64,000 nucleotides of DNA from Asterias rubens (lineage: Eukaryota): assembly GCF_902459465.1 (NCBI RefSeq), contig NC_047062.1, forward strand, positions 21,514,001 through 21,578,000, in the 5' to 3' direction. Positions 2,261 through 62,997 of the stretch are shown here, one piece after another. The notes under the pieces are model-generated. The model was not told the origin of the DNA and made no database searches. It was given only the letters and a program-made list of their open reading frames with translations. Positions within the stretch are counted from its first letter, which is position 1. Every line of letters starts with the position of its first letter. The translations under genes were made by a program, and so were the position numbers.

Positions 2261-2354
2261 CTTTTTCTAAGAGTAGCATCACAGACTTTGACTACTCGAA
2301 TAATGTCCTTCTGTGTTCTGTTGAAATTGTGTAAACGAGCTGCAACCAATAATG
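2261..2354 (-). CDS. BRF1: BRF1 coding exon 7 (94 nt)
   Basis: Acceptor tttgtctttgcag and donor AG|gtaaga. Encodes (A)[30 protein letters not shown](R); phases agree with exons 6 and 8. Confidence 0.95.
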
Positions 2355-26792: not shown

Positions 26793-26910
26793 CTGAACAG
26801 CAACTCCGTTTCAGTAAGAACTCGAGCGCACTCCCAGTAAAATAAGAAGAAACTCTACATGCAGGTTTTCGTTTTCATACATCAGCTGGATTGCGCCATG
26901 TTGAACCATA
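26793..26910 (-). promoter_or_regulatory. Probable BRF1 non-coding first exon / promoter region
   Basis: Donor CAG|gtaaca at 26792, a local rise in CpG, and a YY1-like GCCATGTTG motif near 26895. The transcription start site cannot be determined. Confidence 0.45.
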
Positions 26911-29168
26911 ACATTTTATCCGTTCGTTTGTTCGTTGTGAATGTATAGCTCTCCACTGAGTAGATTCGTCCACTTTTTCAGAGGTGGTTCGTTGTTTGAC
27001 CGGGAATGCTGTTTCAAGTTCATTTGGAAAAGGGGTAAAAAATAAGGCGTACTGCTGCAATTTCATAAATCTTGTGAGCGTAATAACTGGCTAAGCACAG
27101 AAACAGGCATATAAAATGACGTTAAGTTGACATTGCTTTGACTGGTGCCCCATCAATTTTTGCTTAGCAAAGAAAATATGCTAAGCAGTACTTTCTGCTA
27201 ATGAAACTGGCCCTTTCTACCTCCATGCTATTCTACCTCCATGCTATAAACCTAGAGCAGAAATGTTTGCTTGACAAAGCTGTATCTGTGCAGGATGCCA
27301 ATGTCAAAAGGCAATACGTGTGATATGGTATTTTGGCTACCTGGTGATTTAGGCCCCAAAGTTTTTTTCATTTATTGTCTTGTCTCGTTTGGGGGGGGGG
27401 GCTTAGTAACCTTTTTATTTGAGCAGGTGTTTCCAAATGGGCCCATTGCTTTTGCTTTTAACGATAACAATCGTACTTGCACCTTGTTCATGGCGGATTT
27501 TATTTAGCCCCCCCCCCCCCGCCCCCACCAAAAAAAAAAAAAAAATAAAAAAAACATTGTACATAATTACTGCCATCATCAGCGCAGACCTACATGAGAT
27601 ATTCATATTTCAAGAGATATGCTAGCTTTTCTTCAGGCCTTGAGACTTGAGAGCATATATAGTAGCCAGAACTCGTCCCTTTATGTGCGAGTTCTCAGCA
27701 GATCTCCTATAGGGATACCATGGAGGAAGTCTATTTCTTCCTCCATGGAGGTACCAAACCATCGATGTTTCCCATATTGATAGTATTGAAGATTCAGGGG
27801 CGTTTGATGTCAGTTTAAATTATTCGGACGGAGGATCGGAGAGAGCTTGTTCACATTTAGAAAGGCTCATACATTTTGCATTACAAGTCTGGATTGAGAT
27901 AATGTTAGCGCTGGTCCGACCTTCTGCACGCACCCATCACCCGGCCGGCCGGGCCGGTCTGAGACTGCGTCCATTACCACGGCAGGTCACTCACTGCCAC
28001 GCCTTCAATGCACTTTACAGGGATGAGAACGTCTTCTAATCGTGTCAAATTTGGTCTGCTATTACTGTTAGCAAAAATAAAAGCAGTTTATGTCCCCTTT
28101 AATCCCCAATATCCCCGCCCCCTCCCATCCACTTGAGCTGTCATCATCATCAACGAGCGGAGGCAGTGATACCATCAGTTCAAAGAGTTCAGTGGATTCA
28201 TCAGCGACCACCACCAGTAGTTAGCAGTAGGCTGATAGCATGCCAGCCTCGTTGTTTGCTCAAGCATGTTGGGAACTCACCGCATTACCCAACATTAGCA
28301 TCCGCCGCATCCGACGGCCTTGAACATACCCTCTACGCTGTCATCAATATAGTCATCCTCGCCACACTCGTGCCCGCCCCTTAGCAACGGCGCAATGCGC
28401 ATGACTGCAAGAGGCGATTGATGACTGGTGGAGATGTGTTTGAGCTCAGCATGGGTGGTGACTTTTACAATGACTGAAAAAAAAAAAAAAAAAAAACACA
28501 CACTGGAAGCCGACCTAAAATGCCCAACCATCGCGTGACAAGGTGCTATGACCGCCCACCGCCACAACTACGGACATGGAGTAGAGAGAGCTTGGCCGGA
28601 CCGGTATGGCAGTTTGAGGGTGCTGAGTTTTGAAAGAGGCTGGGAGCATAGTCCTCCAAACATTACTTATTCATCAATGTTCTTCTCCACGACAAGGTTC
28701 GGATGGTTCCTGCAGTCGGAGGAAACAAATTAGATGAAACGAGCGAGCGGTTGGTAGCTCCTCTTTGAACGTCACAGCCAACGGACGGATAAAAAGACCG
28801 CATTTTCCAGCACGTGTGTCATTGTTTTAACGGATTCGACTCTCGCCGATTTGAGGTTTATCGTCGTCTTTATTATAAACCTCATGCTTCATGCATCAGT
28901 TTTCACCACCGGCACATCTGCACTTTGGTCGATGTACACCGTTCACAGTTTGACCGGGTCTAACCCAACGGTTACCTCTTAGCGGAAAACTGCGTGTGGT
29001 CTGTGCACCGAACTAGGTCACCAGACGACCTTTCCTTTTGCGATAGAAATAGAAAAGGCATCAGGCACAAGGTTTCCGGACAGAAACATTTACTCTACAA
29101 AGAGTATTCACCCCTAAGAAATTTACACGTTTGAACTCCTAATCAGAGGCTAACTCTACAACAAAATC

Positions 29169-29594
29169 ATGGCGAACGAAGCTCAGCTGTTGAAATTCGC
29201 GGGAAAGTGGAAACTTGAAAAGAGCGAGAATTTCGACGAGTACCTGAAGAAGATGGAGGTGATGTTGCCGATGCGGGCAGCGGCCAAAGTCATGACGCCC
29301 ACGTGCGATATCGACGTGCAAGGGGGAAGTTTCGTGATCAAGATGAACGTACCGGTGATCACACTCCACGTGCAGAAGTTTACCCTGAACCAGCAATTCG
29401 AGGACCTGCTGCCCAACGGGACCAAGCAACTGACCCAGGTCAACTGGGAGGATGGAAAGATCGTCCTACGGGAAGTGGACAAGGGGGACCCGCCTCACGT
29501 GGTCACTCGAGAGGTCAGCGATGCCGGCACGGAGATGACCATGACGTGTACCAAGGGAGACATCATCTGTAAAAGGTTCTACCGAAAGGTGTAA
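29169..29594 (+). CDS. Intracellular lipid-binding protein 1 (FABP/CRABP-like), 141 aa, single coding exon
   Basis: F-A-G-K-W-K-L-E-K-S-E-N-F-D-E-Y-L-K N-terminal signature, TRE and C-terminal CKRFY motifs, and high GC at third codon positions. Confidence 0.93.
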   Translation: MANEAQLLKFAGKWKLEKSENFDEYLKKMEVMLPMRAAAKVMTPTCDIDVQGGSFVIKMNVPVITLHVQKFTLNQQFEDLLPNGTKQLTQVNWEDGKIVLREVDKGDPPHVVTREVSDAGTEMTMTCTKGDIICKRFYRKV

Positions 29595-31283
29595 GCATCA
29601 CCGGTCAGAAAGAACAAAGATCGATGTTCGAGAAGAAGAAGACAAAAAAACCTGCTGCACCCTGGATGAGAAAATTCGCAAAGAAATTTATATAGCGTCA
29701 GGGTTTTCGTTATCAGTTTCGCCATTCGTATATAATTCGTAAAAAGGGCTCTTCTTTCTAAAAAATAAAAAAAAAATAATAATAAATAAATAAATGCACT
29801 TTAACTTCGCGACATACTAAAACAAAAAGCTTTTTAAAAACACAAACACCAGGGAATTGTGGTAGGGGAAGCTATGACTCATAATAAATCACATTATACG
29901 CTCGCGGAGGTTTTCAGCACTGCCGACTGATGCCTACCCAAGGCCACTGCATCGCCTGCAATGACCTTCAACGCGCTCGGATATTGGATTGTGTGGTCGG
30001 TCCACCAGCTATCAACATTTTACCGGTACCTCGGCAAGTGCATTTCCTTCCACTTCGCTTAGCAATTACATAATTACTGGAGAATAATAAACAGAATTTT
30101 CTTCGGTGGCACCATCGCTGTGAAAAAGAAAGTGAACGGCCACGAAGACATTCGTAAGTTATTCATGGATTTTTCTGTTTTGTTTTTCGAGTACCTGTTT
30201 CTATAAAGCAGTGAAAAAATAAAAACCAAAGAAAATGATCAACGAGAGATTTAACTTACTCGCCCTTTTCCCGAATGAAATGTGTGGGACTATTCTGTGG
30301 AAATGTCAACTAGAATGTAAGTTTTTAATCGGCGATTCAATTAAAAAATATATACAACAACATTCACAATGGGGGTTATCAAGTCTCTGCCTGACCAAAC
30401 TGATGTCAACTTCACATGCATGAATAACATTCTGTGTTCATTGAAACAAATTACAAAATTGCTTTTGATAATTGGCATTTTCCATTGACTAAATTTTAAG
30501 GTTGATACTGTTTAGTTTACAACACTGACAAATCAAAAAAGGGATTGGGTCAAAACTTGCTTTTTAAAAGTTTGCATTGCCCGTATTGTGACGACTTGAA
30601 TCCTTGTTTTAGCAGTGGACCACGATCAGTATTTCCCCCACACATTCAAGGGGTAAACATTCTCAAATTACAAATCTGCAAATTGGATTATTAAACTGGC
30701 ACAAACGGGAATTTCTTTGTCAATGTCAAATCCAGGTACAAAAGTGCAGGCTTTATATATACAGAGCTTGCATTGCCGTTGGATGCCGCGGAACTATATA
30801 TGCAAAGCAACAATGCATGGGAATGGTATTTTTTTCTTTTTTCTTTTTTAAGTAACAGGCCTGTGGCGATGTTCCCTTTTAAAGCTTTATTCCAATGCCT
30901 CAATCTTTTAAAAAGTAACGATCATTGAGTAAAATAAATGCAAAATTGTATATTATTTTAGATTATAGAATGGTGGTGTTGTTCTTCATGTGACACTCAA
31001 AATTGAGTATAAACATTATAGTGACACGTGTATTATGTGTGTATAAAAAGCGAATCTATGTAAAGTTGTAAAGTATTGAAATATTAATTAGTCGACTTCA
31101 TCCTAACACGTAGTAATTATCTTAATTATAGGTTTGTGTATTTTGTTTATAAAACCAAACGATTGCTCACCAAAAGGAGATTTTTTTTGCTCAAAAAAAT
31201 GCACAATATGGCTTCTTTTAAACAGCTCAACCAATATTCATTAATCAAATGTACCTGCTAAAAAAAATATTAAATAAACTTCA

Positions 31284-31487
31284 CACTGCAGAAACTGGGG
31301 TGTTAAAATGTATACCATAGGTGTAGTTACATACCGAAAAGAGAATCACAACACCATCAGGGTGTTAAAATAACACTATCACGCAAGCACAATTCCATTG
31401 GTGTTAATTTGACGCCCTATATCATGTCACTTTTGATTCTCTCTTGGGTATCTTTGTGTGGATTTTAACATCCAGGTTTTTGCAGTG
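31284..31487. mobile_element. CACTG-ended MITE (EnSpm/CACTA-like) with subterminal GGTGTTAA repeats
   Basis: CACTGCAGAAAC...TTTTTGCAGTG; second copy at 31655-31873. Confidence 0.65.
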
Positions 31488-31961
31488 TATAAACGCAGAG
31501 TTATTCCTGCAAATATTACAAAGCAAAATGTGAGCGTTATGAATGTATCTCAATAATTAAAGCCTTCAATCGGTGTAGTTGTAATACTATAATATATGCT
31601 AATTTATTCAAGTGATATTTCCAATGTATGTGATGCATTTTTGTACGAACCAAACACTGCAAAAAGTGGGGTGTTAAATTTACACCATTGTGCTGACAGA
31701 TGTAGATACAAAAAAAACGAATTCAAAATCTACATCATAAGGTGATCAAATGACACCAAAATAACACTTATTTCTGCCAACCCATTTACATTGGTGTTAT
31801 TTTTACACCAGATACTTTGTTTGTATCTATGTTACCACACCCTGGTGTCAATTTAACACAAGTTTTTGCAGTATAGAATGGGGAAGGAACTTGAAATTGA
31901 GATTAACTCAATAGAGAAGTAGGCCTACAGCGGGGGTAAAATGATATCATTGACTCACACA

Positions 31962-32130
31962 CACTCTAAAAACTCTCGGGTCAAATTTGACCCGGATTCC
32001 GAGTTTGGGGAGGCTAACCCATTTTGAGGTCAAACGCTGCCCCTGAAAGTGGTTTAAAATCGGCTCCGACGGGTCATGCTGACCCACAAATGGGTCAGGT
32101 ACCACGTGACCCTGATCCGGATCAATTCTG
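31962..32130. repeat. CACTCTAAAA-headed repeat rich in GGGTCA/TGACCC palindromes
   Basis: Three related copies (~31962, ~32469, ~34335) share CTCTAAAAACTCTCGGGTCA(N)4TGACCCGG-like heads. Confidence 0.65.
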
Positions 32131-34929
32131 ACATGTAAAAGTCGTGATGTAAAGTAAGACACCAAGTGGATATCACCTGCTTTTAATCTTCAAGATATCT
32201 CCAAATAGTTACAAAAAAGTGTGTCTGTTCGATTCTCCATCCTTTTATCAACATTATCTTTATGCTCGATACTATTATGCGGTATTAAATCTAAATGGTA
32301 TGCATCGATGTATTCTATAACAGAGATAAAATGCTCATTGTCGCCCACTTGCATTAGGCGAATTCTATCAGCGCTATAAACGACATTTCAGACGGGGGGA
32401 TTATTAATAATGCCATGACATAGTACTTTGGCAAGTCTATTCTGTGAAATGAACAGGAATATGCTGTCCACTCTAAAGACTCCCGCATCAGAATTGACCC
32501 GGGTTTAAGAGTCAGTTTGACCCGGAATCTGTATTCAAAATTACTAAGAAATGGGTCAAACTGACGCAAAATTCAAGTTAAATTAAAAAAAATTTAAATC
32601 AGTTTCCGGGTCAGCCTGACCTTAAATACAGGTCATGCCCACTATGGCCCAGAATGGGTGTAACCAACTGAAATGACTGTTTCTTTCTTCAGATTTATCA
32701 TTTTGTTGTTCCCTGTGTTGTGACTTAATTTATTTCAAACCCAAAGAGGCTGATGCTGGGAATCGTTTGTATTACTTTTTTTATTACGAGTTATGTGATA
32801 GCGTATAGCACGCTTTAGGTAAGAAAAGAAATGTATGGTGAATAAAAGTGCATTTTGCTCCAACCATAAACATGCAGTGATTTGTTCAATACAAAGCCCT
32901 TTTACTTTTTCCTTCAGCAAATGACCCCAATTTAAGTTGTTTTGAGTCAGATTTGGGTTTTCTAACAACCTGATATGCCTATTATAAATTGCAATTTAAT
33001 TCTAGCAATGGGTGAATGCATGCAACGCTCTCAGAATGGGGTCTCAAAGGTTCTATTTAGATAACCTACAACGATACATTCGTTTTGTCCCATGTTGAAG
33101 TTTCGGCTCAGAAACTAGGCTAACATTAAGAAATACGGTCAGTCAGATTTGTTGTTGTCTACAATATGTATGGACGTTCTTAAAATACTTCATAGTTCTT
33201 CTCTTTGAATGTATCAATTCTGGGCCGGGCCATAGAGATGTGTGTTGTGAAATGTCTCCTATTCCAAGACAATTTCAGTCCAGAAAACGCATGTGTGACA
33301 CACTGGGTGCCAGACTAGACCGCACATCGTTGGGCTGTGCTAACATTCGGACCGAATAGCGTCCAGCAACAACAATAAAACTTTTCAAACTCGCAACCCT
33401 CTTATTAAGGACACTGTACTCGTCGTACTGAAGACATTTTATGTGTGCGGACTGGGTAATTATTGGCCATAGTTTGAGATAAAAATAGACACATTTGAGA
33501 GTTGGAAGTTTTGGTCCAATATCAACAAAATCGACCGTGCCGGCATGGTCAAAATTTTTAATATTTGGGTCAAACTTTTTCGGGTGATTATGGGTGTGCC
33601 TGATGGATACACGTGAAAGTAACGTCGAGGTTGGCAGGCCTTGAATTTCATCTTTGAGAGGGTAAGGCCGTTTTCATTTTGCAAAGGGCACTTCCATTGG
33701 AAAATCTGCAAGTCTATGTGAAATTTTTGAAGGGTACAAAAGCCAAAACCGGCCAACAGTTGCCATGCCTCATTTGCCCCACATGCCTGTAATGGTGAGG
33801 TCATGACTCGTTGTGGTATAGTGACTTGAATATAATGTGCCCCACTTTCATGACACTCTAGATGTGACGGATTGACAACAACGTAAGCCAATCTGAGATG
33901 ATGCAGACCGTCAGCTGCACTAAGACCACGGCACCGTGCCTCCGAGGGGAGGCTGGCGACACCAACACCCTTGCCGTCTATCGCACCAATAGTCCCCCAA
34001 GTTTCCAGCAGCGTTCGCTGTCTTTTTTCTTTTTTTGATCAATGACGCCACATTACAGCTTGATAAACGACTATGTACTTGAATGACTGAGGATAGTAAT
34101 GCAAAGAATGCGTGTATGCTGACGTGAGGTTTAATCAGAAAAACAACATGATTTCATAAGATGGTTGCTTTAATGTGAATCGTTTAGAATGTAATTGGAC
34201 CGATGTATAGGGTTAACCATGCAGATCATCCAGGAAATTGGTCATGTTTTAGTAATAACCATCCTTCATCATGCAAGCTGCCAGACACTTTGTTCCGGGT
34301 GGTGTATCTATATCATCCAATACTGGTTCTCTCTCCCTAAAAACTCTCGGGTCAGAATTGACCCGGATTCCGGGTCTCAGTGGGCCTGACTGACCCATGT
34401 TTGGGATAAGGCTGACCCGGAAATTGGTCAGGCCCGACTACTGGACCCGGAATCAGGGTCCATTCTGATCCAATGGAAAGTTTGTTATCATTTACATTGT
34501 GCCCAATTTGGACGACAGCGGGCGCTCATCAATCTCTCAAGAGAAGTGTGAAAATCGTACATTCGTTATACGCGCCAGCTTCAAATTAATTTGAATAGCT
34601 TTTTTTGATAGCTTTTTAAATGCATGAAAGTCCACGTCTTAAATTTAGTGAGTTTTTTATAGTGAACATAACTATGGTGTCAATGCCTGAATAAAACCAG
34701 GATGAAACGTTACAAGCATTATAATATAACAGTTTAGTTACTATTTAATTTATATTAAACAATTATTTCATTCATATTTCACTCGCAGCTCCAAAACACA
34801 TACTGACGTGATTGCCCACAAAAACAATTAAGCATGATAAATTATTGAGTATTCATGTAAAAGACAAACGATCAGAAGTTTTACAGCTCATTATCAAAAT
34901 GCAGTATACATACACTAAGCTAAATAAAG

Positions 34930-35235
34930 ATGGCGGCCGCTGAGCTAATAAAGGTTCCTGGCCCACAATATCGGTGCGATTTACACCCATAACCAGCTAA
35001 TACAGTCGTCTCAAGCAGCTCTTTAAAATGTCTGGCTCGACTGAGGAGGAGCTTTTCACCGCGGCATCAGCAGCAGCATCGGGGGAAATCGTTGCCAGAC
35101 ACGGCATGCGTGCGAACATCCATCCCCTCCCCCTTTTCGTCATCGATTCTCGGCTCAGGCATGAAGGTGATCGCCACGTGTAAAAAATGTGCCGTCGTCT
35201 GCTCCGGAAGGACGGATCACCTGCCTCCTCTCTGA
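34930..35235 (+). pseudogene. Possible decayed coding remnant (101-codon frame with one premature TAA)
   Basis: GC-rich patch with frame MAAAELIKVPG...*...GSGMKVIATCKKCAVVC; only a weak resemblance to the termini of iLBP gene 1. Confidence 0.2.
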
Positions 35236-35823
35236 GGATCAAATGCATCCTCGTCAGTGTCTGACGTTTCCATGGTGATGAGATGGAGTGGATTTCTTCC
35301 CCTCATCTCTTTCTATCTCTCATGGGTGCATGAGCCCAGACGGACTGTACTCCTTTTCATAAGAGTGTCTGGCGAATTGTGTGCTCATCTTATGCATCTG
35401 TCGTGTTTGCTTTATTTGATTTGTCCCTTTTGAATTTTGAATTTTTATTCAAATTGACAAAAATCGTGACCTTAAGGTCAAATTGCAATAGTCATTACAA
35501 AAGTTACAAATAGATATGAATTGTTACAAATAGATATGAATTGTTTGTATGCTCTAAATGCTGCATTTTTATGGCAAATGTCGTTTAATAAACCATTTGT
35601 TCAGTCGTATAAGTGAAAAATAATAATTGATAATTCCTTCCGACCGTGTGGCAGCACCCGCCTCCCCGCCGTTCGTTGACCGGGCAGACTTGTCCTAATT
35701 TTCCCGCAGAGTAATTTTAGACTGGCTGTGAGCATTTCCGGTTTCCAGGCAGAAGAGACTACGGAACCAAACCATATCAAGAGACGCTGGCCGGCACTCT
35801 TTTCAGAAAAAGGGGGAAATTAA

Positions 35824-36158
35824 AGGCACTACCGACACCTTTGGTCATTGTCAAAGACCATTATTCTTACTTGGTTTATCCAACAAACATAATGCATAAA
35901 ATAACACATCCGTGAACATTTGGACTCATTGGTCATCGAAGTTGCAAGAGAATAATTAAAGAAAAAACACCCGTGTTGCACAATAATTTGTGTGCTTTCA
36001 GATGCCGAAAAAGGACATTTTGGAGTGAGAAATTGGCCTATGACCTCCTTAGGCTGTTTGTCACAATGTTTTATACTATCAACAGCTCTCCATTACTCGT
36101 TACCAAGTAAGTTTTTTGCTAACAATTATTTTGAGATTACCAACAGTGCCAAGTGGCT
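35824..36158. mobile_element. Kolobok-like MITE family A copy
   Basis: TTAA|AGGCACT...AGTGGCT|TTAA; internal sequence homologous to 8578-8927. Confidence 0.75.
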
Positions 36159-50340: not shown

Positions 50341-50584
50341 TGGGCCCAATTTCATAGAGCTGCTAAGCACAAAAGTTTGCTAAGCATGACATTTTTGTCT
50401 TCATAAAAACAGGTTTTCCAACCAAATTTCCATATGGTTTTCAGGATAAGCCAACAACAGCTGATTACCAGTAACAGGCAATATCCATCAAATTGTAATT
50501 TTGATGGTAATCCTGTTTTTATCCAGGAAGAAGTTTCATGCTAAGCAAATTTTAGTGCTTAGCAGATCTATGAAATTGGGCCCA
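50341..50584. mobile_element. MITE with ~30-bp TIR (TGGGCCCAATTTCATAGAGCTGCTAAGCAC family)
   Basis: TIRs match 29 of 30. Other copies at ~46514-46702 and ~53874-54194, with fragments near 11431, 16240 and 27150. Confidence 0.8.
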
Positions 50585-51410
50585 GGTTGTAATAATATAA
50601 AAGGACTTTGGGGGGGGGGGGGGTTCCAAGAGCGACAGCAATGATTTAACATTCGCATTTTGTATTTATTTATTGAATTGTTAACCAAAACTGAACAAAA
50701 AGGAGAAAATCAGTCGTAGTGGCGCATGGGTCGACTTGCGCGCCAGGCGAGGTGTCTCTATTTAAGGTCAAACCATAGTTTTAAATTATAGATTATAGCA
50801 TTGCGATATCCTTCCTCTTGGTTGTTTTGAATGTACTTGAAGACAAACAAATATGTACAGATGGTATCAAGCTGAAACCCAGCTTCAGTTTCCGGGTTTT
50901 AGTGCAATACAACGCAGTACAAAAGTCACACGGAGAAACAAAAATAGGATTTCTTTTTCTTCAAATAAACTATGTTTAATTTTGTTGAATATCCAAACGT
51001 GATAGGGCTGGCTATTATGACAAACAGTTGTAATTTTAAAAATTATCTCTTTTACTAATTGGCAATAATTTGTCTTTTTCAAAAACTTATATTATGCTTT
51101 ACAGAATCGTTCAATTGTATACCATCTGAAAAAAAGGCTAAACCCAAAGAAAACAAGTTTTCGAAAACATGTTTTGCGCTCTGAAAACTACCGGGTCAGA
51201 TGTGGACTCGGATCCCTGGTGATGGAAAGCAAGGCAGTTATGTTTCACTTTGAATATCCTTCTCAAAAAAGGGCTAAACCCAAAAGAACCATGAGAAATG
51301 TTATTGTTCTTTGCACATCTACAGAGATGGAGTATGCCGCTTGGTCGATGAACTAAAAATAATACGAAGAAGTGTTCATTTTCATTCCATGGCTGACTGC
51401 TGGAAACATC

Positions 51411-51803
51411 TTACTGCTTTACGTAGTACGTCTTGGCAACGGTCCCGTTGAAGTCGATGGTGACGAGCATCTCCCCACCCACCAGCTCCCTGACGCTGCC
51501 GCCCTTTCCCCCGGTGGCTCTGGTGACCAGCTTGTCATCTTTCCACTCCGACGAGGACTCGATGTCGTGTCCCATCACGCTGTTGGTGAAGTTACTACCG
51601 ACGTTGATGGTGAGTTCCTTCTTGCTTGACGGGTCCTTGTTGTTGGTGGTGACGATGGTCACTGCGTTCCCTAACTGTGAGATGGTCTCGGTCATCTTCA
51701 TGTCCTTGGGGATCTTGTCCATTGGGATTTTCAGAGCGGTCAGAAGCTCCGGCCAGCCCTCAGAGCGACCGCTGGTCCAGACACCGCTGAAGTCGGTAGG
51801 CAT
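51411..51803 (-). CDS. Divergent intracellular lipid-binding protein 4 (FABP1/6/10-like), 130 aa, single coding exon
   Basis: DFSGVWTSGRSEGWPELL...EWKDDKLV...SVRELVGGEMLVTIDFNGTVAKTYY. Confidence 0.88.
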   Translation of the reverse strand: MPTDFSGVWTSGRSEGWPELLTALKIPMDKIPKDMKMTETISQLGNAVTIVTTNNKDPSSKKELTINVGSNFTNSVMGHDIESSSEWKDDKLVTRATGGKGGSVRELVGGEMLVTIDFNGTVAKTYYVKQ

Positions 51804-52385
51804 GATGAGAGTTTTGTTTTTGGTCTGGGATATCTGATGGAAAGAAGCAAAACAAAACCAAGCTATCAGCTACAGATTCTGTCAAGATACTACACTTGAA
51901 TTTGGTGGTGGTGGATGGGAAGGAATCATTTAAGCATATTATTATTTTTCGATGATAATCCATAGGTGTTTTTTAATATAAAACTAATGGCGGAGTCAAA
52001 AAAGGTGAATTTAACAGTAAATTCAGAGGCAGCCATTTAGACTGCATATAAAATTAACACTTTGGTACAAAACATAAAACAAATAATACATAAATTATCG
52101 AGCATTAGGCCTAATCATGTGCCTTAATGTTTTCTTCCGTCTTGTCTGGAACTATCAATGCCCGATTATTTGACTTGTATGGCTCTAACATTTCAGAACA
52201 TCGAAAACATTATTTGCACCGTCAGCATTTATGGCAGCTTCTTGTACTTTAAAGGGCCGATGAGCAAAACAAATTGTTTTTCTTTATAAAATCAAGTGTA
52301 AAGTATACTGGTAGGCCCGACTATAGTGACATCTTATTGTATCAACATAGAGATTTAAACTGTTAAGATGTTAACCGTCTCATTG

Positions 52386-52734
52386 AAGCACTGGACACCT
52401 TTGGTAATTGTCAAAGACCAGTATTCTCACTTGGTGTATCCAAACATTATGCATTAAATAACGAACCTTTGAAAATGTTGGTTCAATTGGTCATTGAATT
52501 CGCAAGAGAGTTAATGCAAGAAGAAACACCCTTGTTGCATTACTTTGTGTGCTTTCAGGTGCATAATAAAAGGCTTCGGCTGAAGTCTTTAACTATTTGA
52601 GTGGGAAACTATACCTCTTTCTTACAAATTCAGAGGGATTCGTTTCTCTCAATGTTATTTACTATAAACAGTTTTCCATTGATCGTTATACAAACCAAGT
52701 AAGTTTTTATGCTAACAAGTAGTGTCTAGTGCCT
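52386..52734. mobile_element. Kolobok-like MITE family A copy in the 5'-UTR intron of iLBP gene 4
   Basis: AAGCACTGGACACCTTTGGTAATTGTCAAAGACC...GTGTCTAGTGCCT; target-site duplications are degenerate. Confidence 0.7.
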
Positions 52735-52779
52735 TTCAGAATGAAATGGAATCATCATGAACCCAACAAGAAATCTCAC

Positions 52780-52948
52780 CTGAAGATGAAAGCTGAAAAC
52801 ACGAAACGTCTGTCGCAGTGGGCTGATCACAACAAGAAGGACGAACTCACCGATCTACCAACCTTTTTATCTGCGATCAAACAATCACCAGGCAGTCCCA
52901 AGACCAAGTTTAACGGGTCCTCCTATTGGTCGATTATCTCATTTGCAT
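52780..52948 (-). promoter_or_regulatory. Probable promoter and non-coding exon 1 of iLBP gene 4
   Basis: On the minus strand: octamer ATGCAAAT (52948-52941), AGATAA (52939-52934), CCAAT (52929-52925), GATAAAAA (52871-52864), then a strong donor CAG|gtgaga at 52779 that pairs with acceptor ttccatcag at 51834. Confidence 0.55.
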
Positions 52949-53329
52949 AATCAGGTGACTGACAACACCTACCCGTGTTTAAATATAACCATTACGTATC
53001 CGTGGTACGAACCAATGATCTTGTGTTTGGTTATACAAACTAACCCGCGTTAATATTAACACAATTAAAAATGTCTACCATATGACTTGTTTATTTTACC
53101 CTTTACCTCGATTCTACTAAAAATACAACTACAGTGAGTTTATGTTTAATTTCTGGGGCAACTTCGCCACCTTTGCCCCGTGACTCCTTTTCAGCATATG
53201 GCTGTTTGCGGTTCGATCAGAGGCTTCAATACCACCAAGTACGTGCCCATTGACTGGCCTTTATTATGTCCTTGCTAGACTTCCTCAGCAGCAGGTATAG
53301 CCAATCAATTTTCATTTGACATACATAAA

Positions 53330-53698
53330 AGCCATTAGACACTTTCGGTAAACAGTATTGTCCAAGGCCCACACTTCGTGTATCACAACTTCTATATAAA
53401 ATAACAAACCTGTGAAAATTTAGGTTCAATCGGTCATCGGAGTCGGGAAAAAATAACGGGAAAAACCCACTCTTGTATCCGCACGTTTCCTCGTGTCAAG
53501 ACATTTGTTCAAAATAAATTCGTAATTCTCGCTATCGAGAATTGATATTGTTTTAATGTTTTCTCAAAAAGTAAAGCATTTCATGGAATAATATTTCAAA
53601 AGAAGTCTTTCACCACTACCTTCTGTAAACCCTGTGAGTTATTTGTAAATCTGTGATTTTTTTTGATTTATTTATTTTACCGAAAGTGTATAATGGCT
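53330..53698. mobile_element. Kolobok-like MITE, related subfamily
   Basis: TIRs AGCCATTAGACACTTTCGGTAAA / TTTACCGAAAGTGTATAATGGCT followed by TTAA. Confidence 0.75.
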
Positions 53699-55746
53699 TT
53701 AAACAACGCGTGCTCAGACGAAAACTTGAAAATGTTGATTTTAGAGCAGTCTGTTCAAGTCAGGGTATGTGTGTGTGTGTGTGTTCGATTAGGTTTGTTT
53801 GGGGTTATTTGTTGGTGTTTGTTGATGTGTGCTTTTTGTGGTGGTGGGCGTTTATAATGTTTGTTGCTCAACCCGGGCCCTAATTTCATAGAGCTGCTTA
53901 AGCAGACAATTCCCCCTAGAAATGTCGAGACCACACCGGCTCTTTTCAGAGCCAACACTCCCACAAAAGAGATTTTTCACATGGTTGTACCTGTAAGTTA
54001 ACTATTAATGAAATAGTATCCTTCTAGTTATCCACACCATGCAAAGCTTCAAACAATGCTTAAAAATGTTGTGCTTAGCAAGATACCAGTCATAAATGGT
54101 GCATGCGATATGGTATTTTGGCTGGTAACGTTATTGTGGTAGCTTTGTTCTGTTTAGCTACTTTTTGTGCTTAAGCAGCTCTAAAACTTGGCCCTCACTG
54201 CACTGGATGTTATTTCAGCACACTTGTATGGTGCTGCGCTTACCGAGAAAATTACGTAGAAAATGAAGTCACAGTACTTTAAAAAAAAGCCTTCCCATTT
54301 TACCTTGTGCAGATTTTGGCCTTACATGCGTGAATGGATTCAGCTATGGCAAACTTGTACTGAGGCCCTGAGGCCTAAAAATAGCAATGCTTTAAAACAA
54401 TACGTACAAATCACTGAATACTTTAACAAAAATGCTGGTATTGCTGATAAGCAACTTCCATTTATCGAGATTGATATTTAACCGGGTACCAGTACAAAGA
54501 CTTGCCAGATATTATTAATCAGGATCCTGTGTAACGAGTCATAGGCAACAGAACATGTGGATGCACAATATTTTCAGCATAAACATTTTGTCCTAAATTA
54601 TGGTTGTACACCCGAAATCGGTTAAGGTTTTCTGACACAGTTTTCTTGAAAATGACTTCATTTAAGAGCGAAATGGTCACGGAAAACATGATTGTGAAAA
54701 TTGTGCGTGGTTTTCACTATTTTCTCTTGAATCTACACAAAGGATTAAACCCATATTTTCAGAGGTCGTTTTTACTATTTTTTTTTTGTAAGTTTTGCTT
54801 GATCACACATTAATTGTCTACGACTAATTATGTCAGATACAACGATCCAGGTCTACCTTTCAACAAACTACGTTTCATTTTGCCTTTTTCGTGTTTTTTG
54901 TTGTGTTTTTTTTTTTTTTTGGTGGGGGGGTTTCAGGGAATGAGAATTGTTCTTAAATCTGTAATTAGCAAACAGTATTTAGTTGTTCTCTTCTTTGTTT
55001 TTAATCAAATAATAAAAATACATGTTGTCAGGGCTGGACAAAAGTATTTATCTGAAAACTTTAATAATACAATAAAATAACAAACTTTTATCAAAAAAGA
55101 TGTGGTAATAACTCTGACAGATTAATGGCAATAATATAGCGTCTGATATAAAGCATCTTCTATAGAAACATTTCACTTTGAAGTAAAGTGGTTCTGTAAA
55201 AGATAACAGTTTTTATGCCCGGATATTTGAATCTGAGAAGCGTTAATGCCAATAACGTTTCTCATACAGATTTTGTACTCATATCTTCCTGCGTCGTGGA
55301 CATTATTCGTTCTGGATTTTCGGCAATCTAAAAAACGCGACCACTTGTTGACACGCTACCTTCAGATGCTAGTTTTATCGTGTACATACTAAAGGTATCC
55401 TTTGCCTTTGCAGATCAATCATAAACTTGTCAAATTTGGTTGTGATTTTACTTTTCTTTAACCAAAAAATAAGACGTTGAACTGCAAACCAGGAGTTCCT
55501 TTCCCCTTGCCTGCCGTGTTTTGAATACAAATTATGCACAAATTAACAGTAGACGATCCTTTAAAAGTAAAAACCGTTTCACAATGTTATCAACAGCCCC
55601 GTCTGGCATAAGAATACAGAATTTGCACCCTGTGCCAAATTTTAACACTGAAGTGGATTTCCAGCTCCTAATATGGTGTAATTAGGACGATTTGTATCAG
55701 GTACAAGGATTATGTCTGCCTTTGAATCACGTGTGAATCACAGCAC

Positions 55747-55844
55747 TATAAAGTGTGGGTGTCTGTTACACCCTGTCTACTTTTTCTAAACCGAGGCATC
55801 GACACTTGCCCATCGTCCACCGCAGTTTGTATCTTCACAGTAAG
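55747..55844 (+). promoter_or_regulatory. TATA box and non-coding exon 1 of iLBP gene 5
   Basis: TATAAA at 55747-55752, overlapping donors gtaagg (55840) and gtatga (55845), and acceptor gtgtcatccag at 56309. Confidence 0.55.
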
Positions 55845-56339
55845 GTATGAATGTGATGAAATGGTATTTGTCTATAGACATTTAACAGATTAAAATATTT
55901 TTGTAATCTGAGATATTTGTGACAATTTTTTATTGTTTAGGTTTTGTCCAAATTTAGAAGATTAAATTAACTCAAAAGAAGATGAGACAATTTTTCACTG
56001 TTACAAATCCTATAGTTCATTTGACAAACTGAAAATATTTTATTTTTTGCATGTAAGAAGTTTTCTTATGACTTCGACACAAAAAGGAGGTCCTGGAGAA
56101 GGGATGTGGTCTAGTCAGTGGTCTGGTCCAAGCTCTGCGGTGGTACGCACCAGAGACCCTTGAAGATTTTACCTATAGGAAACGGACACCAATACCTATA
56201 CTGGTTTGCTGACAAGATCAATCTGAGTATGGTATCAATGGCACCGTAGCTCGGTAAATTCTCTTCATTATTTCTCAAAATGTGTATTCTTTTTCACTGT
56301 GTCATCCAGACAGGTTACTCCTTCGAACCAGTTTGCATC

Positions 56340-56738
56340 ATGGCAGTGGATTTCTCCGGCACGTGGACCTCCTGCAAGACCGAGGGTTGGGCAGAGTTCC
56401 TCCAGAAGACCAAGGTCCCCAAGGGAAGCCTTCCACTACCAGCAGACATCAAAGTGACTGAGGAGATCAGCCAGTGCGGCGACGTCATCACCATCAAGTC
56501 CGCCAACAGCATGGACACCGGGTTGAAGGAGAAAACCATCAACGTTGGGAGTAACTTCATCACCGAGATGCCACCAGGCACGCAGCTGGAGTTCAGCACG
56601 GCGTGGGAGGGGAAGAAGCTGGTCCTGAGAAGGATCGACGGGGATGGGACCTCCACCAGGATGATGGAAGGGGATCAGATGGTGCTCGTTGTTGAGCACG
56701 AGGGCACTGTGGCCAAGACGTACTACGAGAAAGCCTGA
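56340..56738 (+). CDS. Divergent intracellular lipid-binding protein 5 (FABP1/6/10-like), 132 aa, single coding exon
   Basis: MAVDFSGTW...TEGWAEFL...DIKVTEEISQCGDVITIKS (liver-type FABP-like segment)...AWEGKKLV...AKTYYEKA. Start placed at atcATGG. Confidence 0.9.
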   Translation: MAVDFSGTWTSCKTEGWAEFLQKTKVPKGSLPLPADIKVTEEISQCGDVITIKSANSMDTGLKEKTINVGSNFITEMPPGTQLEFSTAWEGKKLVLRRIDGDGTSTRMMEGDQMVLVVEHEGTVAKTYYEKA

Positions 56739-57444
56739 CTCAAGGAGGCTCATAATGGGTGCTGTCTTCACTCCTTCAGCCATGGAGGATAACCACTACC
56801 ATGGAAGACACAAACATCTTTTGGTAGCCAACTTTAAGATAATTGAATGTCCTTTTAATTGATGTATGATATTGATTCAAACCTTCGCGTTGACCATTAC
56901 TCACACCATGTAGGAAGGAATCGGAATTCCTCCAAGATCACACTGACTTTCATCTTTAGAGGGACATCAACAAACATCACTCCAGACTATATTAAACTAA
57001 TCATTTGAATACCGATGTAAAAATATAAAGCACAGTTGTGTTTTCCAACATAATACAAATCTCACTTGTTGAATTACTGCATGGTGCAAGACCTACACCC
57101 TGACATGATTTACTGTTACTTGGGAAACTTCATCATGCGAAACTAAACACGCACTAAACGAATTATTGTTCTTACGTCATAACCTCTCACAAGCGCAGCT
57201 GCAATCCAGGTTTAAAATGTTCATTTTCCACGTTAAATTACGTTTTATTGAATATTAAAGAACAAAGTTACAAAAAAACCAGTACTCAGAGTCAATTTGT
57301 AAAATATTTAAATACCCCCCCCCCCAACAACTTCAAAAGCTGCCGGATCGTCACAAGCGGCACGTATGCAAAGACCAATAAATAAAACAAGTAAAACTGT
57401 GTCCAGTCGCCGGATAGTTCGTGTGGATTAAAATTTTAAGTTAA

Positions 57445-57812
57445 AGGGAAGGTATACGTTTGGTAGTTACTCAAAACAAATATTAACTTAAAAACTGACT
57501 TGATAACGAGCATTGGAAAGCTGTTGATAGTATAAAACATTGTGAGAAACAGCTCCCTCTGAAGTAGCATAGACTTTGAGAAAGAGGTAATTTCTCACTA
57601 AAATAATAACAGACTTCTAGCTAGAAGTCTTTTATTCCTATCTGAAAGCACACAAATTCGTCCAACAAGGGTGTTTTTCCTCTCATCATTTTCTCACAAC
57701 TTCGATGACCAATTGAGCTCAAACGTTCACAGGTTTGTTATTTTATGCTTATGTTGGGATACACCAAGTGAGAAGACTGGTCTTTGACAATTACCAAACG
57801 TGTACCTTCCCT
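57445..57812. mobile_element. Kolobok-like MITE with intact TIRs and TTAA TSDs
   Basis: TTAA|AGGGAAGGTATACGTTTGGTA...TACCAAACGTGTACCTTCCCT|TTAA; TIR match 20 of 21. Confidence 0.85.
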
Positions 57813-59218
57813 TTAAAGGTGTGGTTAAATAACTAAAAGTAACATTGCAGAATGAAATCAACAACACCGCTAATGGTATATCTGGTCGATTAATAGAGAT
57901 AGGATTTGACAAAAGCAGTGTTAATTCCTTTACGTAGCTTGAGTCGTGTATCGAGCACTGATATCACTAACTACACAGTTGACGCTCACAGTCTGAAAAT
58001 TCATCATGCTTTCTATATCCGCAAAAAAAAAATTCACAATACACATACTGGCAATTTATATGCCACTGCGAGCCGATTTAAGGCTAAAATGAGCATTCAC
58101 TATTATTTGAGAGAGTTGCATGCTTTAATTAGAGGTAATGCACAAAACAATAAGCCAGTTATTAGGGCAAGATAATCAACAAACTTTAAAATGGTTCATT
58201 GATGGGATCAAGATAAAGTAATCGTCTTTCAGCCATGTACAAAGATGTTATAGTTCGTGCCTCGTCCGTGGCGTATGCAACAATTAATGTACGTTTTCGT
58301 TTTGAAACAGCATCTGTCGGTCAAAATTCGTCAGAGGAAAAAACATGGCGAAAACAAACTTTAGAGAGCTTCAACTTTGTTCGTAAAAACCCGTCTCTTA
58401 ACTTGTGTATAACATGGGAAGCTTACTTCTAATTCTACCTCCATGCTTCAACATCGAACAAATTAACAAAGCCCCGCCCCCACCACATTCATTTTAGACT
58501 CTAGAATTGCACCACTTGTACTTGAAACTATTACGACTTCACATCAGCCCATTCTTTTCAGTAAAACACATCTTCAGAAAGCCCTATCAAATCGAAGTAT
58601 TGACATTTCCCACAGATCGTTTTTGACTTCTCTGTCTGTCTTAGTACTTGAGGTGCTCTTCAAAATGAGCGAAGTACACATGTAAACCAGGGTCCAGTGC
58701 TTGTAAAACAAGCTGACACGACGTGATAAAAGACTATAAAATGATGAATAATATCGTTTGTGGATGAATTTACTCAGCGTGCACAAAGTTCAACGAACAT
58801 GAACTTTGTGTTTATTTTGTGTAGGGCTGCTACAGGTTTGTTTTAAGGAGAGTAACACGAGTTGACATTTCAGGTTCGAGAAATTAACTTCACATAGTAT
58901 GATTGATGATGACGTTGGTATATGTGTGCACCACTCTCAATAGGCCAAAAAGCACGCGCCAAATTGATTCTTTCTTCTCTTTTTGTTACGGGGGGGGGGG
59001 GGGCAAGTTACCACAACTTTAGGTTTCTGTGTTTCAACCTTCGAGGAGGCGTGATACATTTTAGGCTGGCTTGCCAAACGCCTGGCTCGCCAGAAATTTT
59101 AAAGAAATCTGAAATGTATTTGTCAAAAAATATACTTGATTGAGAATAAATTTCAAGAGGCTGACTAACCTTTGTTGAGTATTTTGGAGTATTTAGCATT
59201 TTAGCATCAGTTGCTAAA

Positions 59219-59391
59219 TGCGGCCGATTTCACGAAACACTAGGATTAATCCTAACTCGAGTTAGGACGAGTAACCCGTCCTAACTTACGATGGGTTCAA
59301 TTCGTCCTACGTATTTGGATACGGAACTGAACCCGTCCTAAGTCCTAAGATTAATCCTAAGTTAGGAAGAGTTTGGTGAAATCGACGGCAG
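59219..59391. mobile_element. Foldback MITE with GATTTCAC..GTGAAATC termini and internal TAGGA/TCCTA repeats
   Basis: Terminal inverted GATTTCAC/GTGAAATC; a shorter homologous copy lies at ~9084-9210. Confidence 0.7.
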
Positions 59392-62300
59392 TGGTGATTA
59401 TTGCCGCAGCCCAAAGTCACACTCGGGTGTTGGCTTCATATGCTACTAGGTGTAGCACTTTTCCAGTCCGCCTGCTGCCGTAGTGCGGTTTTTCAATAGG
59501 ATCTTCTTCTTTTTTAATCGATTTAAAAGAGGGAATCCTTTGGAAAAAAAATCCGGAAAATTGTTTAGGATGACAATTCTAATGTACAGAAAAAAACAAA
59601 TTGCCTTCCGCGTCCAACAAAATGAAGTTATCCTTTGACGAAGTTGTATAAGTATAAGTATCTCATTGGCTGGTGTGGCAGGAGATGCTGTCTCCCAGAG
59701 ATTATGTTGTTGAGCCCCCCCCCATCCACACCCTTCCCACCCTAGAGAGGCTGTCACGGTACAAACTTCTTCTGAGAGCGCCCTCTTTTGATCCAGCCTC
59801 CTTCATCATTTTGTACAGTCCATTATTTTCCATAATATTATGGAGGACAGAATCCCCCGGGGACAGAAATCCCTTGGACACCGTAACGCTTCGCTTTATG
59901 TGGATCAACCGCGGCAGTCTAATATAGGAGTTGCCTCCATTATATAATCAAATGGAGAGTCGAAAAATGTTTAGTGTTCTGAATAATTCCTTACCGCGTG
60001 TTACCTGCTGGTGGCGCTATATCAAAACAACCATGTCTTTGCGTACACATTATGCTACCATGTACATGTATGCCAAGGGTCAACACAGTGAACGTCGTAC
60101 ACACATGCAAAAAGCGATGTGACCTTTATAATGGCATAGCCTGTCGACCTGTGTACAGACAATCATTAACACATACAAAACATAGCCTACAGTACATTAC
60201 ATCGTTCATTTTGTACATTGAGGCTTATGTTGGGATGTAAACCTCGACAGGTGTGGCCACAAGACACAATAAAGTCGTAAGTGCTGTTTTGTTTTGTCTT
60301 AATGATATTCCATTATGTCAGCAAATAATTGTTTACATAAACCTCAACTCTAGCTTCTAACTAATCCTATCAATCACATGGGGCCTACGAGCCGGCCTGG
60401 ATGGTGGCTAGGTAAGGAGTAGCGCCTAGCCTAAGTTAAAAGAAAGGGCTACTGTCTAATCCTACCTCCATGTTACAGTGTTTAATAATTATGCTAGAAC
60501 TAAACTTCAGAGGGGAGGCATAATTAGCTATATTTACCTCTCTTAGGAAGTAGAACCAAGAATAGACCACAACCATACGCTTTAATATGACCTTGCTGGT
60601 GTGCTCTGCCATGTGCAGTTGGTGTATTTAATGACAAAGGATAGTGTGCATTACAAGGCTTTTTATTTTGGGGGCCTTAAAAATCGCCCGGCAAGACAGG
60701 TGATAAGCCTAGTGAATTAACACTATATTATAGCCGCGCCAAGTACATTAAATTTAGCACGGGAGTGTCCCGATTAGACTTAATTTTTTCTACATCCATT
60801 ATCATGGAGGTATAGAAATAGATTGGTTATACCACATTTAAGTTTATCGTCATCAGTTTGCCTTCATAGCCTAGGCTACATAGCCTAGCCTACATCCATC
60901 CTAGGACATGCTCCATACAATACTGGGTAGTGGACATGTCCATGACGTGTGGGCCTACGTACGCCATCATAATACTAGCCTATATCTAGTGATTATTTGA
61001 TCATACACCCTTTGAGATTTGCCAATATTTTATATTGCAAATCACTACATTTTGTGCAAAATAATATACGGGGTCGTAGCTTAGAATGTGGAGGGTTGCC
61101 CACGGGGAGCTTGATTGAGCCCAGCAAGGAACATCAATGGAAGTGAGCCTATTGTATTATTGACCAGCAACAATGACCACAGAAAATGAAATCGGGTGGT
61201 AAGTCAAAACACATAACCCACTCACTTATAAATACAGTTAATCAACTTTGACCTAATGCCCCAGAGAATGTGTGTCTTCAGTACAACCTCTGTTTAATAC
61301 TCCGTTATAAACTTGTCAAATAAACAGCACAAAGTTCATCTTTTGACGTCACCCAATAGGTTTAGCCATGCAATGATAAACAAACCAACCTCATTGAACG
61401 TACATTCTGTGTTATTTAGAGCAAGGACTCGGATGTTTTTAGTGCCAGTTGTCTGCAATATTTTAGTTGACAAGTCCTTTTTCACGATTGAATTTAAGTC
61501 GGCTGACATTTTGTAGATATTTTCACCGTTTGCTTTTAGAACTTGTCACGGATGGGTTAATGTACAGCAGATAATGTAAGGGTAAGTTTGGGTTTTTACG
61601 GTTTTTTTTTCTTCTTCTTTTTTCCTAACCCTAGGCCTACCCGGTACATGTGTAGTGTACGTACTTTCAAATGATAGCAATCATAGTTGCTAACCGTTTG
61701 TGTATGTTCCGTCCTATAGCCCTGGTGGCCTTTCTGTGCACAGCACAGAGGAAGAGCCTTGTACTATATGTTTCATCATAACTTGACGATCGTCTGTATA
61801 CTGGATGTAGTGATTAATCTGGTTAAGTCGTCAGCCTGTAATTTTTTCAAACTAGAGGATACTTAATAAAATATAAAAAAATAAAAAACGATTGCATTTT
61901 TGTATGTCAAATATCCACCATGCGCCGATCGCAAGGCATATACAATAAATCAATGTTATCATACACTGGTTGAACCAGCACTGGTTGTCCTTGCTCTATG
62001 GTTGAATCAGTGAAAATTATGTCACCAAAAACGTATCTGACTGTTTAAGAAATAAATGTTCAGTACCATCATCAATAAAATCGTTCAATCACTTTCACTG
62101 CATGCTACGAATTAACATACGGCACACGCGGTAACTACCGTGGTGTGGTGCATGCAAGGTTTCAATAAAAAAGTTCCCCATAGAAGTGCCCCTAAGTTCA
62201 AGACATGTTAACTGAAACATTCTCACATTGCCAAACTTACTATACTATTGAGTTCTATTTACTCACGAAATATACAGATTAATTTACAGGAACAAAGAAA

Positions 62301-62583
62301 ACATTCACAATACATTCTAGACAATTTACATAATGTTACCAAATTTATTGAGTCGTCTATTCAGAACAATTTTGTCGGTATATGAAACAAGACAACATGA
62401 GATAAACTGTTGAATTCTGTTTCCAGGATAACCAAATAAATGCTTCCGTTGCATGATGTCCATAAAATATTTTCCCCTCTTCTTTCCATAGTGTTGATTT
62501 TGACAGTCGGGGCAATGGTAACTCAAACGTGGCGGACCAAAGATTGTTGCTGAGAAAGAACAAAAACTATACCGTCCAAAACA

Positions 62584-62997
62584 ATGGAAGATTCGATACC
62601 ACCGGCAGACGTAGAGGAGGCCTTTATTGGCAAATGGAAATCCGTCAAAACGGAAGGAATGGACGAATTTGCCGAGGTATTCAACATCGAAAAGAGCAAG
62701 ATACCGGAGAATCCTTATTGTGAGTTGGACATCACTAAGGACGGTGAGGGCGCTTACATCATCGTGAATAAATCCGACGGAGGACTAAAAACTCAGCGAC
62801 ACGAGCTTGGGAAGCCTTTGAAAGACAACATCATGGGACGGGAGGTGGATATTGTAACGATGTGGAATGGACGGAGGCTGGTCACGTCTAACGTCAAGGG
62901 GGATTCGTCCCTGTCAAGGAGCGTTGTGGACGGTATGCTCGTGTGTGTTGTGATGACCAAAGACTTTACCATCACCACGACCTTTGAAAGATGCTGA
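62584..62997 (+). CDS. Highly divergent intracellular lipid-binding protein 6, 137 aa, single coding exon
   Basis: AFIGKWKSVKTEGMDEF...HELGK...DNIMGREV..VTMWNGRRLV...SRSVVDGMLV shows iLBP spacing and length. Confidence 0.82.
   Translation: MEDSIPPADVEEAFIGKWKSVKTEGMDEFAEVFNIEKSKIPENPYCELDITKDGEGAYIIVNKSDGGLKTQRHELGKPLKDNIMGREVDIVTMWNGRRLVTSNVKGDSSLSRSVVDGMLVCVVMTKDFTITTTFERC

Follow-up and report, generated by a model that had tools for sequence, protein, structure and literature searches.

We analyzed a 64,000-nucleotide stretch of the genome of the starfish Asterias rubens (contig NC_047062.1, positions 21,514,001 to 21,578,000; hereafter the window), which contains six genes for intracellular lipid-binding proteins (iLBPs), the family that includes the FABP and CRABP proteins. 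The genes, here called g1 to g6, are arranged in tandem in the orientation +, -, -, -, +, +, and the open reading frame (ORF) list contains a complete single ORF for each of them, in agreement with the first-pass annotation of this DNA. There are no N runs in the 64-kb window. Each continuous ORF spans the whole iLBP domain, and therefore no coding intron is needed in any of the six genes; the absence of coding introns, which that annotation had also proposed, is confirmed for g3 and g4 by assembled contigs. The six genes are strongly divergent members of the family, again as proposed: identity to g1 is 21-32% across the other window genes, and identity to g3 is 50% for g4, 43% for g5, and 27% for g6. 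They can be divided into two groups, a conventional type comprising g1 and g2 (with g7-g9, which lie outside the window) and a divergent type (D type) comprising g3-g6.

All six genes belong to the iLBP/FABP family, because g1 to g3 match known structures in the PDB, all six are recognized by a profile hidden Markov model (HMM) of canonical members only, and the models of g3 and g6 show the expected fold. In phmmer searches of the PDB, end-to-end alignments were obtained with squid ReP1-NCXSQ as the best match of g1 (5e-21), followed by CRABP2, with FABP7 (3e-21) and also FABP3 for g2, and with CRABP2 (2e-7) and also FABP5 and FABP2 for g3. The canonical-only HMM was built from 33 canonical-clade proteins of other animals, including teleost FABP3, amphioxus FABP, crinoid, and bryozoan sequences, and its scores are 116 bits for g1, 105 for g2, 53 for g3, 49 for both g4 and g5, and 45 (44.7) for g6. 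Structure models were made for g3 and g6. The AlphaFold models have pLDDT (predicted local distance difference test) values of 92.6 for g3 and 88.8 for g6; in both, helix I is followed by ten strands, whose pattern in g6 is iLBP-like. Helix II is shortened to a 3-residue turn in both models. Foldseek placed the g3 model closest to FABP5, FABP3, and FABP4, at template modeling (TM) scores of 0.82-0.88 and a root-mean-square deviation of about 2 Å, and zebrafish L-BABP appeared only at rank 34. The ranking of matches does not support the earlier description of g3-g6 as liver/ileal-like, as the best sequences are CRABP2, FABP5, and FABP2, and the best folds are FABP5 and FABP3. Three residues are invariant in all six genes, namely G12 and W14 of the G-x-W motif and R114 of the T-R-E strand (g1 numbering).

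The Pfam check suggested in the first-pass annotation turned out as expected for only part of the genes. The PF00061 model is passed by g1 (30.7 bits) and g2 (41.7 bits), and it gives no match to g3-g6 at E<=0.1; this model spans all lipocalins and is insensitive to the divergent clade. The Diadema relatives carry PF14651. Taking the Pfam miss as a sign that g3-g6 are not members of the family is overruled by the PDB, canonical-only HMM, and fold results. PF00061 matches on two other Asterias contigs (C13 and C20) were considered as extra iLBPs and were rejected as true lipocalins, which have the TDY...YSC motif.

In FABP3/4/5/7 and the CRABPs, an Arg...Arg-x-Tyr triad (Arg106, Arg126, and Tyr128) holds the carboxylate of the ligand. 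The full triad is present in g1 (TRE ... KRFY), and g2, g7, and g8 contain Arg-x-Phe, with both ligand arginines kept. The second carboxylate-binding Arg is replaced by Ala or Thr in g3-g6 (KAYF, within AKAYF, in g3, KTYY in g4 and g5, and TTTF in g6). Judging from these residues, g1, g2, g7, and g8 probably carry fatty acids or retinoid-like acids. The D-type proteins g3-g6 probably carry uncharged hydrophobic ligands such as carotenoids, a lead suggested by analogy, because the second Arg is absent, helix II is short, and the echinenone-binding protein (EBP) of a sea urchin has D-type nearest relatives. EBP is a FABP-like protein of 131 aa from the gonad of Evechinus chloroticus and the sole biochemically studied echinoderm relative (PMC4156332). 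Its nearest relatives in S. purpuratus are XP_789999, XP_782066, and XP_785180, which are named intestinal- or liver-like (PMC4156332). The sequences of XP_782066 and XP_785180 (PMC3796463 supplement) are of the D type and match Diadema proteins P0080 and P0083 by eye, and the EBP tryptic peptide EIIDGQMVTTVSK resembles the D-type motif REIVGGQMV in an eye comparison. Our word-indexed protein searches returned only 4-14 relatives per search, and the EBP homologue of S. purpuratus was not among them.

Transcription was assessed with assembled contigs from four sequencing runs (X1-X4) over window positions 47300-53299, which cover g3 and g4; three of these runs were guessed to be RNA. The g3 coding region is unbroken in the contigs, where the piece 47504-47980 is joined to 48616-48811 (X1, 687 nt, and X3). 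The gap between the two pieces has GT-AG splice sites, and the contigs are therefore RNA-derived. The removed segment is an intron in the 5' untranslated region (5'-UTR), which ends 28 nt upstream of the ATG. A homology search of the window with the g3 5'-UTR exon returned only the exon itself. Contigs of X2, X3, and X4 (poly(A) plankton metatranscriptome) span the g4 coding region continuously over 51040-51837, and a strong acceptor is located 30 nt before its ATG, at the contig ends. An acceptor-like site is also found 30 nt before the ATG of g5, by sequence pattern only, and the in-frame ATG at 56280, which precedes this predicted acceptor, is probably intronic. As the UTR-intron acceptor lies at a common position about 30 nt before the ATG, this arrangement indicates that g3-g5 arose by DNA-level duplication of a whole gene rather than by repeated retroposition. 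For g6, 70% of the words of its stretch are found in run X1 and 57% in X2, suggesting that g6 is expressed as well. A contig that carries P0006 and was considered as a g2 transcript was rejected, as it is collinear genomic DNA with 99.6% identity.

Six-frame profile searches of the whole 417.6-Mb assembly, in which the window is C1:21514001-21578000, show that the tandem array consists of eight genes, with g7 and g8 located just beyond the window end. An unlinked single-ORF gene (g9) and a two-exon D-type gene (g10) were found on other contigs; the g10 intron lies in phase 1 within the Gly codon of FTIG|VEF. The array is flanked by a BRF1 domain upstream of the window, consistent with the BRF1 adjacency noted earlier, and on the other side by SLC3A2_N-domain exons at C1:21598677 and C1:21606071, 15 and 23 kb past g8.

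The four exons of a canonical iLBP gene are separated by a phase-1 intron after about codon 24 and by two phase-0 introns, after about codon 82 and codons 116-120. Two tandem genes on contig C5 follow this plan, each with exons of 70/176/114/51 nt and introns in phases 1, 0, and 0, which match the conserved vertebrate introns in position and phase. The profile search caught this pair only by a 22-residue exon-1 match with an E-value of 0.76. Because canonical four-exon genes persist elsewhere in the same genome, the intron-less state of the array genes is derived, and the C5 genes are possible candidates for the parent type of the intron-less copies. The array genes show what is looked for in retrogenes, in that they contain none of the parental introns and the intron-bearing genes are on a different contig (C5).

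Searching 1.84 billion representatives with a profile yielded 3,186 matches, and 30 of the closest were named via cluster look-ups. Among these 30, the relatives of g1, g2, and g7-g9 are all from echinoderms or hemichordates (Patiria, Acanthaster, Anneissia, S. purpuratus, Apostichopus, Saccoglossus, Ptychodera, and Glandiceps), and those of g3-g6 and g10 come from Patiria and Diadema. By gene, g1 is 62% identical to protein P0018, and the g2 orthologues of Patiria and Acanthaster are 66% and 62% identical to g2. The Asterias amurensis proteins are 99% identical to g3, 97% to g4, and 97% to g6; identity to Patiria is 61% for g3, 54.5% for g5 (a single-exon gene), and 54% for g6 (a single-exon gene at the same array position).

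The gene order is conserved in Patiria, where four tandem single-exon D-type genes are found, three of them being the best matches of g3, g4, and g5, followed about 21 kb further on the same scaffold by the g6 orthologue and two g7/g8-type genes, all with a single exon. The resulting order (Pat_d, g3, g4, g5, g6, g7/8, g7/8) equals that of Asterias. In hemichordates, Saccoglossus has two adjoining single-exon genes 5 kb from SLC3A2, and Ptychodera has three single-exon genes 4 kb from SLC3A2 as well as a second trio elsewhere in the genome, in which two of the three are single-exon. The crinoid Anneissia (P0024) and S. purpuratus (P0023) also have single-exon genes. Because the Patiria array is collinear and hemichordate single-exon tandems lie beside SLC3A2, we conclude that the array is older than the Asterias-Patiria split, the ancestor of both genera already having had g3-g8 as single-exon genes in this order, and that its conventional-type part, with the SLC3A2 linkage, is older than the echinoderm-hemichordate split. 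The same two observations contradict the proposal of a lineage-specific repertoire. As for the related proposal of a single retroposition followed by duplication, the derived intron-less state and the tandem arrangement hold, the mechanism is at best right in part, and the age and scope do not hold, as the array is older and extends beyond starfish.

A maximum-likelihood (ML) tree was calculated from 125 rows and 138 columns under LG+C20+F+G4 by the posterior mean site frequency (PMSF) approach. Proteins of <120 or >165 residues (e.g. P0012, P0013, P0015, and P0019), near-identical cluster mates, and the database copies of the window were left out. The D type forms a clade of 13 echinoderm rows (support 100/96), which includes g3-g6 and Diadema P0074, and within this clade g3-g6 group with Patiria sequences (95/85). 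An echinoderm-only clade contains g2, g7, g8, and g9 (86/89), the placement of g1 and P0018 is not resolved, and the two canonical C5 genes fall among crinoid, amphioxus, and teleost FABP3 sequences. The six window genes do not form one clade, since g3-g6 are split off by the 100/96 branch, and the monophyly anticipated in the first-pass annotation is not found. Two groupings seen in a quick tree, a sister relation of the D clade to the hemichordate 'liver-like' proteins P0121 and P0141 and a 29-row ambulacrarian clade with 98% support, were gone in the careful ML search.

Several non-canonical genes do contain introns. The S. purpuratus gene P0039 (L029:10001-21219 and 26908-27195) is of the conventional type and has three coding exons, with introns after codons 22 and 96, a model backed by a spliced contig (L030). 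Its second intron is apparently common to the neighbouring gene, which has a break after about codon 96, and looks like an echinoid-specific gain common to tandem copies. An extension of the first exon of P0039 into a longer iLBP-like ORF was checked and found to be spurious. In Diadema, the intron of P0083 (L034), the orthologue of g10, lies six codons upstream of the g10 intron, so that these orthologues have introns at two different non-canonical sites. Overall, one of the five introns in the non-canonical group is at a canonical position; the other four are at new sites, as would fit a complete loss with sporadic gains afterwards.

In the history that we propose, one iLBP gene would have lost all three canonical introns before the echinoderm-hemichordate split, through retrocopying or through recombination with a cDNA. 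This intron-less founder would then have been multiplied by ordinary DNA-level tandem duplication, one branch in echinoderms would have diverged to the D type (g3-g6, plus the unlinked g10), and some copies would later have acquired introns at new positions. We assign a probability of roughly 0.55 to the reading that the six ORFs encode functional small beta-barrel lipid carriers of the cytosol, that they belong to an old eight-gene array, and that the array has this four-step history; for the single-founder history by itself, the odds are about even. A further-reaching version is tentative: all conventional and D-type iLBPs of ambulacrarians might derive from one fully intron-less founder that existed before the split, with the array beside SLC3A2 ever since and introns regained after codons 22, 59, 66, and 96, plus at the old intron-2 site in Diadema. 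If this version is true, the family is a compact natural case of complete intron loss, repeated gain, and parallel gain at an ancestral position.

Several points weigh against our reading. The backbone of the tree, with its 138 columns, is a polytomy. A single clade of all 47 non-canonical ambulacrarian rows is not rejected by an approximately unbiased (AU) test (p 0.55), and the constrained tree is even 6.7 log-likelihood (lnL) units better, which speaks for our reading, but this grouping was defined after the tree and names were seen. Transcripts were assessed from assembled contigs, for g3 and g4 only. Nothing usable was found among the hallmarks of retroposition: no A-rich tract lies downstream of g2-g8, g1 alone has A-rich stretches, among its poly(A) signals, and flanking repeats (target-site duplications) were not searched. 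We note that neither hallmark would survive the inferred age, and that, in any case, duplication at the DNA level would account for seven of the eight copies. The link to EBP consists of a published BLAST table and an eye comparison of published sequences, and the ligand of g3-g6 is predicted only. Finally, Diadema P0074, a member of the D clade, has its sole intron exactly at the canonical intron-2 position and phase. This intron could be retained ancestrally, in which case the D founder was not fully intron-less, or it is a parallel gain at an AAG|GT proto-splice site; P0080, the sister of P0074, has a single exon.

The P0074 intron is central to a different history, in which the introns of the same old array were lost stepwise and more than once. 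The D founder would have kept canonical intron 2, still present in P0074, and the conventional and D types would have become intron-less separately, for example by cDNA-mediated deletion in small, highly expressed genes. This history accounts for the P0074 intron, which agrees with canonical intron 2 in phase as well as in alignment column and occurs within a strongly supported clade (100/96), and it is in line with the free ML tree, which does not unite the two types. However, it requires at least three independent losses of intron 2 within the D clade (in P0080, on the g3-g6 stem, and on the g10/P0083 stem) together with two gains, while the remaining introns of the group are all at new positions and the D-type genes lie within an array whose hemichordate counterpart is already intron-less. 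The AAG|GT junction of P0074 is moreover a typical proto-splice site, so that parallel gain is possible, and we regard stepwise loss as doubtful, though a serious alternative.

The absence of coding introns in all six genes, with canonical genes elsewhere in the genome as possible parents, would also be expected if a retroposed founder had been amplified within the starfish lineage only, with the six genes as one clade. When the eight array genes and their starfish orthologues are constrained to one clade, the AU test gives p 0.086, which is above 0.05, but the constrained tree is 55.6 lnL units worse. Genes of crinoids, echinoids, holothuroids, and hemichordates group with g2/g7-g9 or are of the same type, single-exon tandems are linked to SLC3A2 in two hemichordates, and D-type relatives exist in sea urchins, which together make this explanation very unlikely. 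We give almost no credence to the view that the six, or some of them, have no function and are either processed pseudogenes or ORFs that arose by chance. Mammals do have intron-less FABP pseudogenes (PMC3796463), g3-g6 stay under the Pfam threshold, and g6 is on a very long branch; yet the ORFs are intact, with protein identities of 97-99% in A. amurensis and 54-61% in Patiria, transcripts of g3 and g4 are seen, that of g3 being spliced, and the AlphaFold models of g3 and g6 are confident.

Intron-less FABP genes as such are already known. Single-exon FABP genes, supported by transcripts and with changes in the ligand residues, have been reported in five phyla, including S. purpuratus and Saccoglossus kowalevskii (Zheng et al. 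2013, PLoS One 8:e77636, PMC3796463). These genes are similar to the Asterias array in that they are single-exon, often have altered ligand-contact residues, and exist alongside multi-exon paralogues. The Skow_FABP2 of that study is the same protein as P0045, whose sequence groups with the g1/g2 type and whose gene lies beside SLC3A2, and the study's two S. purpuratus genes are of the D type, like g3-g6 and g10. That study lists genes per species; it describes neither a conserved tandem array nor a linkage to SLC3A2, and it covers neither the two types of ambulacrarian genes nor starfish, whereas Asterias has eight arrayed genes and one unlinked gene, all with orthologues in a second starfish order. 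We found no paper on the starfish array or its SLC3A2 linkage. What is new is therefore the conserved array, its synteny, and the pattern of intron loss and gain, beyond the intron-less genes known from sea urchin and acorn worm.

Compared with canonical FABP3/4/5/7 and CRABP1/2, the proteins have the same fold, length, and G-x-W motif, and the two ligand arginines are kept in g1, g2, g7, and g8. Unlike canonical iLBP genes, the six window genes lack all three conserved introns, and g3-g6 differ further in the missing second Arg and the shortened helix II. Mammalian FABP3/FABP5 pseudogenes and the intron-less segment of rat Fabp6 are also intron-less copies within an intron-bearing family (PMC3796463). 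The mammalian FABP retrocopies are dispersed, young, and mostly dead, whereas the Asterias genes are arrayed, conserved between Asterias and Patiria, at least partly expressed, and equipped with their own 5'-UTR introns; unlike the mammalian retrocopies, those of the conventional type have hemichordate counterparts.

Our findings on the starfish iLBP array do not overturn current views. They show that the intron-less state of the sea urchin and acorn worm genes is a conserved syntenic feature rather than a set of scattered recent retrocopies, and they offer a small family for mapping the loss of introns and their later gain. In physiological terms, the starfish is a strongly pigmented animal, and g3-g6 are candidates for the transport of carotenoids or other uncharged lipids. 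For annotation, the starfish iLBP catalogue holds nine single-exon genes (eight in the array and the unlinked g9), the two-exon gene g10, and the canonical four-exon pair on C5, and it should be kept in mind that gene predictors can fuse or miss tandem single-exon copies. The coordinates of these genes and of the introns discussed above are collected in Table 1.

Table 1 Genes, 5'-UTR features, and introns. Positions without prefix are window positions; columns are those of the protein alignment.
Feature	Position	Strand	Description
g1	29169-29594	+	141 aa, single-exon iLBP gene, conventional type (ORF list)
g2	41269-41676 (ATG start); ORF from TTG 41269-41715	-	135 aa, single-exon iLBP gene, FABP7/FABP3-like by sequence
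g3	47557-47952	-	131 aa, single-exon coding region, D type
g3 5'-UTR intron	47981-48615	-	635 nt, GTAAGT...TTTCAG, joint 47980/48616 in X1 and X3
g3 non-coding first exon (at least this part)	48616-48811	-	spliced contig pieces
g4	51411-51803	-	130 aa, single-exon coding region, D type
g5	56340-56738 (start by homology, ATG 56340); ORF as listed 56280-56738	+	132 aa, single-exon coding region, D type
g6	62584-62997	+	137 aa, single-exon iLBP gene, most divergent member (long branch)
g7	about window-equivalent 65071-65556 (L008:1438-1923)	-	161 aa, single ORF, charged C-terminal tail
g8	about window-equivalent 68598-69041 (L007:1486-1929)	-	147 aa, single ORF
g9	contig C5		unlinked single-ORF gene
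g10	contig C21, L010:1501-1699 and 2325-2524		two-exon D-type gene
Canonical gene 1 (gene pair gA, gB)	C5:4840000-4849999 (L025)		exons 906-975, 4856-5031, 5534-5647, 6614-6664
Canonical gene 2 (gene pair gA, gB)	C5:4850000-4859999 (L027)		exons 6-75, 5424-5599, 6649-6762, 7700-7750
Canonical gA, gB introns	columns 34, 100, 141		phases 1, 0, 0
Asterias g10 intron	column 82		phase 1
Diadema P0083 intron	column 77		phase 0; g10 orthologue
S. purpuratus P0039 introns	columns 32, 113		phases 0, 2
Diadema P0074 intron	column 100		phase 0; after exactly 246 nt

Long ORFs of 113-136 aa overlap g3-g5 in antisense or in another frame, at 47600-48010 (+), 51433-51837 (+), 56315-56656 (-), and 56436-56783 (-). 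They have no homologues among the matches and are most likely a by-product of the codon make-up of the real genes. A short interspersed repeat with a consensus around TCAACATATGCATAAAATAACAAACCTGTGAAAATTT is present in the window at 52388-52600 and 49949-50100, and another copy lies within intron 3 of the canonical gene on C5 (L025, at about 6000-6300). In the RNA-derived runs, contigs pile up on it to a very high depth and form many false joints, and it is probably an abundant element similar to a SINE (short interspersed nuclear element) or MITE (miniature inverted-repeat transposable element).

Some database models of relatives are unusually long. The top profile matches P0012 (1590 aa, six iLBP stretches), P0013, P0015, P0020, and P0022 contain two to six iLBP domains, and they may be fused models of neighbouring single-exon genes or true multi-domain proteins. 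A 283-aa model in L029 and a 1468-aa double SLC3A2 model in L036 look like gene-model fusions. In Patiria miniata, the g7/g8-type protein P0019 (L039:7342-8082) has an N-terminal extension of ~105 residues, rich in Pro, Thr, Ser, and Glu, before the iLBP domain and encoded in the same exon.

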